From Octopus bimaculoides (lineage: Eukaryota), in the NCBI RefSeq assembly GCF_001194135.2, contig NC_068983.1, positions 39,235,232 to 39,276,676 of the forward strand: a DNA stretch of 41,445 nucleotides, given 5' to 3'. Within the stretch, counting starts at the first letter, position 1, and the number at the start of each line of letters is the position of its first letter. A model generated the notes under the pieces. It worked only from the letters and a program-made list of their open reading frames with translations. It made no database searches and was not told the DNA's origin. Shown in pieces: positions 17,886 through 18,064 of this stretch. The position numbers were made by a program, and so were the translations under genes.

Positions 17886-18064
17886 GTATGGGAAGCAAAG
17901 AGGCCTTTGAGAAAGTTCAGTCTGGCTACAGGATGCCATGTCCACAGTATTGCCCTGCTGAGATTTACAATGTTGCCCTCACTTGTTGGAACATTAATGC
18001 ACCAAGGCGACCCTCGTTTGACTTTCTGAACAGCTTTCTTCATGATTGCCACTCTACTTCCTGA
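17886..18064 (+). CDS. Src-family-like tyrosine kinase terminal coding exon (subdomains X-XI)
   Basis: Acceptor tttttcctag|. Phase 1 completes A|GT = Ser and gives SMGSKEAFEKVQSGYRMPCPQYCPAEIYNVALTCWNINAPRRPSFDFLNSFLHDCHSTS*. GYRMPCP...CP and RPSF match the Src/Frk type. Confidence 0.95.

Follow-up and report, generated by a model that had tools for sequence, protein, structure and literature searches.

The non-receptor tyrosine kinases of the Src family (Src/Fyn/Yes; Src64B type) and of the Frk/Src42A type are the closest described relatives of the gene analyzed here, which lies in a stretch of 41,445 nucleotides of the Octopus bimaculoides genome (contig NC_068983.1; this whole stretch is called the window below). 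Both types have SH2 and kinase-like domains homologous to those of the mollusc family of the octopus gene, and the octopus kinase domain shows 43-47% identity to canonical Src-type kinases. Compared with them, however, the mollusc proteins have no Gly2, no SH3 and no Tyr527 tail, show HRN for HRD, GFG for DFG and Phe at the Tyr416 position, and carry an N-terminal RING. The introns before GAKFPIKW and (G)MVNREV presumably occupy the same positions as in the SRC gene. Another Src-related gene, SRMS, is found in vertebrates and keeps SH3 and an active HRD/DFG kinase. The SRMS product, a non-receptor protein, lacks both the regulatory Tyr of the tail and a myristoylation site (PMC10220380). These two absences are its only likeness to the mollusc family, which forms its own clade (100% bootstrap) in a tree that gives no placement relative to SRMS or PTK6, the sole PTK6-like sequence having been left out.

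Tyrosine-kinase-group pseudokinases such as HER3 and JAK JH2 keep the kinase fold with substitutions in the catalytic motifs, as the mollusc family does. To our knowledge, none of those described derives from a Src module or is fused to a RING, and we know of no Src-derived pseudokinase in well-studied kinomes. Neither a RING-SH2-Src-like pseudokinase nor any Src-type pseudokinase turned up in our literature search, which included the oyster kinome paper (PMC4883820). On the other hand, the Cbl family, and functionally SOCS and Hakai, join a phosphotyrosine-binding SH2-type module and a RING or E3-recruiting box in one polypeptide, as proposed here for the mollusc proteins. In Cbl, however, the SH2 forms part of the TKB domain, which precedes the RING, and there is no kinase-like domain, an arrangement that is not homologous to that of the mollusc family, and Cbl RINGs match the mollusc RING weakly (E 0.005-0.01). 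With both flanking helices, this RING is closest to those of TRIM2, TRIM3 and TRIM56 (E 2.6e-18). The alignment with TRIM2/TRIM3 (TRIM-NHL) runs over ~80 residues and includes the motifs FLxCxIC...LPCLHxFC...CPxCR...LQ(N/D)NFF, but the mollusc proteins lack the B-box, coiled coil and NHL repeats of the TRIM proteins and have an SH2 and a predicted pseudokinase domain after the RING.

The last coding exon of the octopus gene occupies positions 17886-18064 of the forward strand of the window and encodes (S)MGSKEAFEKVQSGYRMPCPQYCP...SFDFLNSFLHDCHSTS, with a TGA at 18062-18064; the frame from 17888 to 18064 translates to MGSKEAFEKVQSGYRMPCPQYCPAEIYNVALTCWNINAPRRPSFDFLNSFLHDCHSTS and a stop. Its acceptor reads ...tttttcctag/GT, with the AG at 17884-85 after a polypyrimidine tract, which sets the exon start at 17886, and a split Ser codon (AGT), made up of base 14054 and the GT at 17886-87, joins the last two exons. 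By tblastn, the exon is 100% identical to residues 493-550 of the Octopus sinensis protein XP_029633166 (hereafter P0182) and aligns with residues 468-529 of human c-Src (which served as a probe only). The stop falls at the E of the TEPQY of c-Src and a Cys takes the place of the 'DY' tyrosine (EDY), just as the sequence-only reading of this DNA had described; tblastn and the alignment confirm its coordinates and description of the exon.

No GT donor exists in the exon sequence between the conserved FLHD and the stop, which leaves no cryptic splice past the stop. The octopus C-terminus (...FLHDCHSTS) is common to O. bimaculoides, O. vulgaris and five O. sinensis isoforms, Argonauta has its stop at the equal position with one substitution (...HDCRSTS), and in intron-less transcript contigs from another cephalopod the reading frame closes at this very position (FLHDWHYTS); their first 12 bases, counted from the start of the stop codon, agree with those of the window at 11 sites. 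Being shared by the Octopus models, Argonauta and the transcripts of another cephalopod, the stop is real, old and transcribed. A sequencing error, which had been considered as a possible source of the stop, is ruled out by the C-terminus common to the Octopus models and the other cephalopod transcripts, and 17886-18064 is a genuine terminal coding exon of an octopus gene. The protein of the window lacks a tail Tyr equivalent to Tyr527 (Y-Q/K-x context) and is therefore beyond regulation by Csk-type phosphorylation of the tail, a point on which the sequence-only reading was right. As a separate observation, the transcripts from the other cephalopod (contigs L002-L005, ~90% protein identity) encode a Tyr two residues from the C-terminus (HDWHYTS), and octopus and the other mollusc classes are without such a Tyr.

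Two further exons are complete in the window, on the same strand and in phase with the last one. The exon of the kinase N-lobe and hinge, at 2101-2357, encodes (A)KWNNQVEAAVKMQKK...LLWISAQ (also written AKWNNQVEAAVKMQKK...LLWISAQ) between an acceptor AG at 2099-2100 and a donor GT at 2358-59, and keeps the beta3 Lys (AAVK) and the alphaC Glu (FLDEAQ). Searches by tblastn with c-Src and P0182 as queries located this exon, which shows 98.9% identity over 87 amino acids to P0182, the sole mismatch being a read-through codon past the donor. The exon of the P+1 loop, APE and alphaF, at 13923-14054, runs from (G) to (S) with 100% identity to P0182, and is flanked by an acceptor AG at 13921-22 and a donor GTAAGT at 14055-60. 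Within positions 1-2100 no 5' exons were found by tblastn with P0182 or with the Elysia ortholog described below (P0021), which places the G-loop, the SH2 and everything before them upstream of the window. The RING and the SH2 were found in the orthologs of O. sinensis, O. vulgaris and O. bimaculoides with identical exons.

The exon of the catalytic loop and DFG region is represented by its first 13 bases, ATTGCTGATGGGA (IADG), at 5395-5407 of the forward strand. They read ...gtcgcag/ATTGCTGATGGGA directly 5' of a run of 460 N at 5408-5867, one of several N gaps in the window, which has no strand and conceals most of the exon, HRN and GFG included. IADG corresponds exactly to the first four residues of the catalytic exon of the orthologs, which go on with IADGMAYMETENFIHRNLGARNILVGDQNLVKIAGFGMSKVADDPDFNFRK; the same four residues are present in the window, O. 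vulgaris and O. bimaculoides, and O. sinensis has IAGG. Elsewhere, no HRD/DFG exon was found in the window by motif search or by tblastn with c-Src, P0021 and P0182, and tblastn with the latter two detected no copy of residues 394-443 anywhere in it. Since the first 13 bases adjoin the N gap, the seeming lack of the catalytic exon is an assembly artefact. The gap also makes the exon unreadable, so that HRN and GFG in this genome are deduced from the orthologs.

The same gap makes the two O. bimaculoides RefSeq models, XP_052822687.1 and XP_014778435.1, wrong at this locus: both skip the catalytic exon and instead read 16 residues from intron sequence at 13874-13922, and both are also mis-named ('fyna', 'SRK3-like'). 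An AT-rich open reading frame at 8657-8908 (NIPARNLLMS...ILDLV...TFRG, with a phase-compatible GT donor) was considered as a degenerate catalytic exon and rejected as a chance resemblance, because the true exon start, IADG, abuts the gap at 5395-5407 and the acceptor phase of this frame does not fit. In addition, the O. sinensis isoforms X1, X2, X4 and X5 contain a four-residue insertion, LFSG, equivalent to the 12 bases just before the 13923 acceptor (13910-13922). No AG stands in front of this site in the window, and the four residues are absent from the family consensus; to yield the longer form, either a non-canonical acceptor or a difference between species would be required.

At the protein level, P0182 (tblastn) and the O. 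vulgaris protein match the three readable exons with 100% identity, and the cluster of P0182 includes proteins of O. vulgaris, O. bimaculoides and Argonauta. A protein search with the 103-residue C-terminus as query returned only fragments and one partial snail protein. When the three exons were concatenated and compared with 1.84 billion representative proteins, one close, full-length match was obtained, P0021 from Elysia, with 61% identity and an alignment ending one residue short of the C-terminus. This protein, used in turn as a query, retrieved ~30 mollusc proteins (E 0 to 1e-133), all with RING plus SH2 and/or kinase Pfam domains, and none of them with SH3 (PF00018, PF14604 or PF07653) in their precomputed Pfam lists. 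Below these matches, two unnamed multi-kinase predictions aside, come ordinary SH3-bearing Src-type kinases, the next-best named one being Fyn-like (1e-105), and above the score level of canonical Src the search gave no RING-bearing match outside molluscs.

The family comprises gastropod members (Elysia, Plakobranchus, Aplysia, Biomphalaria, Arion, Nucella, Haliotis and Patella), bivalve members (Sinanodonta, Argopecten, Mytilus, Mya, Saccostrea, Pinctada, Mercenaria, Dreissena, Solemya and Tegillarca), a chiton (Liolophura) and, as the cephalopod in the search with the Elysia protein, Octopus sinensis. By exon identity and domain content, the octopus gene is an ortholog within a family that is represented in all the mollusc classes sampled (Polyplacophora, Gastropoda, Bivalvia and Cephalopoda). 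The database names of these proteins ('tyrosine-protein kinase SRK2/SRK3-like', 'Fyn-like', 'Yrk-like') are automatic.

Some members deserve separate mention. In Candidula unifasciata (CAJHNH020004744.1), the three 3' exons of the ortholog map to 3842-4000, 5284-5418 and 8587-8754, with boundaries that match wherever the alignment allows, and HRN and GFG are present in the genomic DNA; the deposited protein (P0001) corresponds to the last two exons only. An intact-looking reverse-transcriptase open reading frame of 372 amino acids occupies 571-1686 of the same contig, upstream of the exons found. The Solemya velum protein P0187 diverges at the C-terminus after the kinase core, and the Mya 'LCK-like' model P0185 is missing the DFG region; both look like prediction artefacts rather than real variants.

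The order of elements along the family is a TRIM2/3-type RING, a disordered linker, and then an SH2 and a kinase-like domain, both of Src type. In the Elysia protein and in that of O. vulgaris (P0278), Pfam detects a RING (C3HC4), an SH2 and a PK_Tyr_Ser-Thr domain, and no other domain. All eight zinc ligands of the RING (C37, C40, C52, H54, C57, C60, C78 and C81) are invariant across 25 members, making a complete C3HC4 set in a RING fold of the E2-binding kind. The SH2 (PF00017, E 7.8e-21) has an intact phosphotyrosine pocket, with the alphaA Arg, the FLxR Arg and the HYK motif (R170, R190, H216 and Y217) invariant in the same 25 members. The proteins begin with a conserved M-A-K/R (M18 and A19 invariant), which leaves no Gly2 myristoylation site, and among the alternative octopus N-termini (MTGD, MCEN and MAAV) there is no MG start.

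The kinase motifs were compared in an alignment of 29 family sequences, 14 canonical Src/Frk-type proteins and human c-Src; 27 complete family members enter the motif table, two partial models being without the exon. HRN (HRNLGARN) replaces HRD (HRDLAARN) in all 28 family sequences that cover the catalytic loop, and the columns H407, R408, N409 and N414 are invariant in 25 members. G(F/L/C/Y)G replaces DFG in 27 of the 27 sequences covering that region, three octopods included; the form is mostly GFG, with GLG in Mytilus, GCG in one transcript and GYG in Solemya. The activation loop reads DDPDFNFR(R/K)G, and Phe stands in for Tyr416 in octopus and in all the other classes; the transcripts of another cephalopod have Tyr at the Tyr416 equivalent (DDPDYNF). 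On the other hand, the family keeps the G-loop (GSGQFA), the beta3 Lys (VAVK; AAVK in octopus), the alphaC Glu (FLDEAQ), the Asn of HRN-x4-N and an almost invariant activation segment. Because the catalytic Asp and the Mg-binding Asp are both replaced in every complete ortholog, the domain is a predicted pseudokinase, and the octopus protein probably has no kinase activity.

The tails follow the pattern SFDFLN(T/S)FLHD, and every family member ends 3-6 residues later, from which the loss of the tail appears as an ancient family trait. HRD, DFG, the E-Y and the tail Tyr are all present in the canonical Src42A-like and Fyn-like proteins of molluscs that were aligned with the family. The sequence-only reading had also allowed for a family that never had the tail, and this is essentially the situation encountered, since all members stop just after FLHD and the canonical mollusc Src genes retain the tyrosine.

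An AlphaFold2 model of P0182, built on the family alignment (mean pLDDT 72.6, pTM 0.50), is consistent with this organization. The RING (pLDDT ~77-88), the SH2 and the kinase lobes are confident, the linker and the activation loop are disordered, and the last helix spans residues 536-549 of 550, with no tail past the kinase fold. The best PDB sequence matches are Fyn, Src, Hck and Lck, the top Foldseek matches are c-Src, Hck and Fgr, and superposition of the kinase domain on Fyn, Lck and Src gives TM 0.87-0.90. The inter-domain geometry of the model (~18 Å rmsd to closed Src and 13 Å to open Src or Csk) is unreliable at this pTM.

Neighbour-joining trees of the SH2 and kinase columns, with 200 bootstrap replicates and support given as bipartition frequencies, were built with Csk, Abl1, Btk and Frk as references and outgroups. 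They unite the family with Src/Frk to the exclusion of Csk, Abl and Btk with 96% support (91% with the kinase columns alone), and these values, like the PDB matches, agree with the Src relationship first proposed from the sequence. A canonical Src plus Frk clade excluding the family receives 95% in the same kind of tree. Sponges already have both canonical lineages and the family was found only in molluscs, so its place outside Src plus Frk may be due to long-branch attraction, and the tree does not fix the exact parent lineage. In any case, trees and motifs together indicate that the kinase-like domain is derived from the Src/Frk group and that the full set of Src regulatory and catalytic elements (Gly2, SH3, the catalytic Asp, the Mg-binding Asp, the activation-loop Tyr and the tail Tyr) has been lost, so that the autoinhibitory machinery of Src is gone in its entirety.

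The octopus kinase domain is 68-73% identical to those of chiton, gastropod and bivalve members. Between pairs of family members, mean identity is highest in the activation segment (90%), followed by the RING (78%), the C-lobe (77%), the SH2 (72%) and the linker (43%). Over 188 codons of the window compared with the transcripts of another cephalopod, pN is 0.067 and pS 0.91; synonymous sites being saturated, the comparison is of a pN far below pS and not of a dN/dS ratio. The Logan contigs L002-L005 (SRR27666086, SRR27666079, SRR27666061 and SRR27666085), of 2.2-3.0 kb, contain an uninterrupted open reading frame of 529 amino acids with the same stop. This substitution pattern indicates that the gene is under strong purifying selection and functional, as had been expected from its intact exons and canonical splice sites.

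The data thus make it highly probable that the last exon belongs to a conserved RING-SH2-Src-like predicted pseudokinase, in which the missing tail Tyr is an ancestral family trait and not a recent truncation that deregulates the kinase. The sequence-only reading of a natural Csk-independent Src paralog stands in its Src derivation and its lack of a tail Tyr, but the protein is better regarded as a predicted pseudokinase than as a deregulated or decaying kinase. An active Src-family paralog that escapes Csk through the absent tail Tyr, being constitutively active or regulated in another way, would account for the tail and for a conserved and expressed gene, and would agree with the retention of the kinase fold, the beta3 Lys, the alphaC Glu, the G-loop and APE. 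This seems quite improbable, however, with the catalytic Asp and the DFG Asp replaced in all complete orthologs, those of three octopod species included (HRN and GFG in O. sinensis, O. vulgaris and Argonauta), with Phe instead of the activation-loop Tyr in octopus, and with no SH3 and therefore no Src clamp to release; the constitutive activity suggested from the sequence does not fit these features. Some kinases without canonical residues still work, such as CASK, which has GFG, and HER3, which has HRN, and the retained Lys, Glu and G-loop, together with the invariant acidic activation loop, leave room for an atypical activity. The opposite idea, a degenerating or pseudogenised Src copy whose early stop and missing catalytic exon would be signs of decay, could point to the lack of an HRD/DFG exon in the window and to O. 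bimaculoides gene models that skip the catalytic exon, and is scarcely credible: the first 13 bases of that exon at the edge of the N gap reveal an assembly artefact, the other exons are intact with canonical splice sites, and full-length transcripts exist. Three exons with 100% protein identity to O. sinensis and O. vulgaris, the kinase-domain identity to other classes and a pN far below pS likewise contradict the degeneration that had been contemplated from the sequence.

A different role for the same predicted pseudokinase would be that of an allosteric regulator or decoy of Src or Csk signalling, dimerising with active kinases or sequestering SH2 ligands, with a RING that is only structural or serves dimerisation. 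Many pseudokinases act allosterically (HER3, JAK JH2, STRAD and KSR), the SH2 pocket is intact, and the activation segment and C-lobe, counted here as the most conserved parts, would suit such a function. Even so, this role is unlikely, if still worth serious attention, as the eight Zn ligands and the flanking helices of TRIM type show little or no variation, which is beyond what a spacer needs, and in TRIM2/3-type RINGs these helices support E2~Ub activation.

Returning to a RING-SH2-pseudokinase with ligase function, the domain content and its conservation allow a mechanism to be outlined, to which we would give a little under an even chance. The intact SH2 would dock on phosphotyrosine proteins and the TRIM-type RING would recruit E2~ubiquitin, while the dead kinase domain would provide a scaffold or a binding module that resembles a substrate. 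Nucleotide binding may still be possible in this domain, in view of the ATP-site Lys and Glu and the G-loop that it has kept. Overall, the protein would be a Cbl/SOCS-like, phosphotyrosine-directed E3 ligase on a Src chassis. More tentatively, one may envisage an undescribed molluscan class of phosphotyrosine-directed E3s, originated by the fusion of a TRIM2/3-type RING to a Src-group SH2-kinase unit at or before the base of the phylum and followed by the loss of catalysis, SH3 and both regulatory tyrosines, which would convert Src-pathway phosphorylation into ubiquitination as a lineage-specific analogue of Cbl/SOCS feedback. The nearly invariant acidic activation segment would then belong to the scaffold or substrate-like surface of the dead kinase domain.

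The short tail first flagged at this locus is one symptom of the conversion of a Src module into a probable pseudokinase joined to a ubiquitin-ligase RING, and not the mark of a natural 'v-Src-like' kinase. The arrangement is conserved in all four mollusc classes sampled, whose common ancestor is roughly Cambrian. What seems new is the RING-SH2-pseudokinase combination; the Src module, the pseudokinase and the RING E3 are known kinds, and the short tail is ordinary within the family. If true, this would be a clear natural conversion of a kinase into a scaffold and a candidate for a new link between tyrosine phosphorylation and ubiquitination. The database names (SRK2, Fyn, Yrk-like tyrosine-protein kinase) imply an activity that is probably absent.

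Several repeats accompany the gene in the window. A 66-bp tandem repeat of 3.8 copies (86% matches), with an overlapping 51-bp repeat, occupies 2431-2734, in the intron ~70 bases downstream of the 2357 donor. A SINE-like element (…CTTTGCCTTTCACCCTTTxGGGGTCGATAAAATAAGTACCAGT…) is present at 17640-17730, in the intron ~160 bases upstream of the last exon, and recurs downstream at 21834-22135 and 22472-22561 as 146-bp and 44-bp tandem duplicates. Long imperfect TG/CA microsatellite arrays with higher-order periods of 107-142 bp extend over 27100-28240, 29540-29700 and 31700-32050, a region in which no genes are evident, and they explain a strong GC-skew peak at 26-32 kb. A retroelement-like open reading frame without a Pfam match is located at 33305-33604 of the forward strand, and another such sequence, a reverse-transcriptase fragment on the reverse strand at 38394-38765 (Pfam RVT_1, E 3.5e-5, below the curated cut-off), is probably a decayed retroelement.
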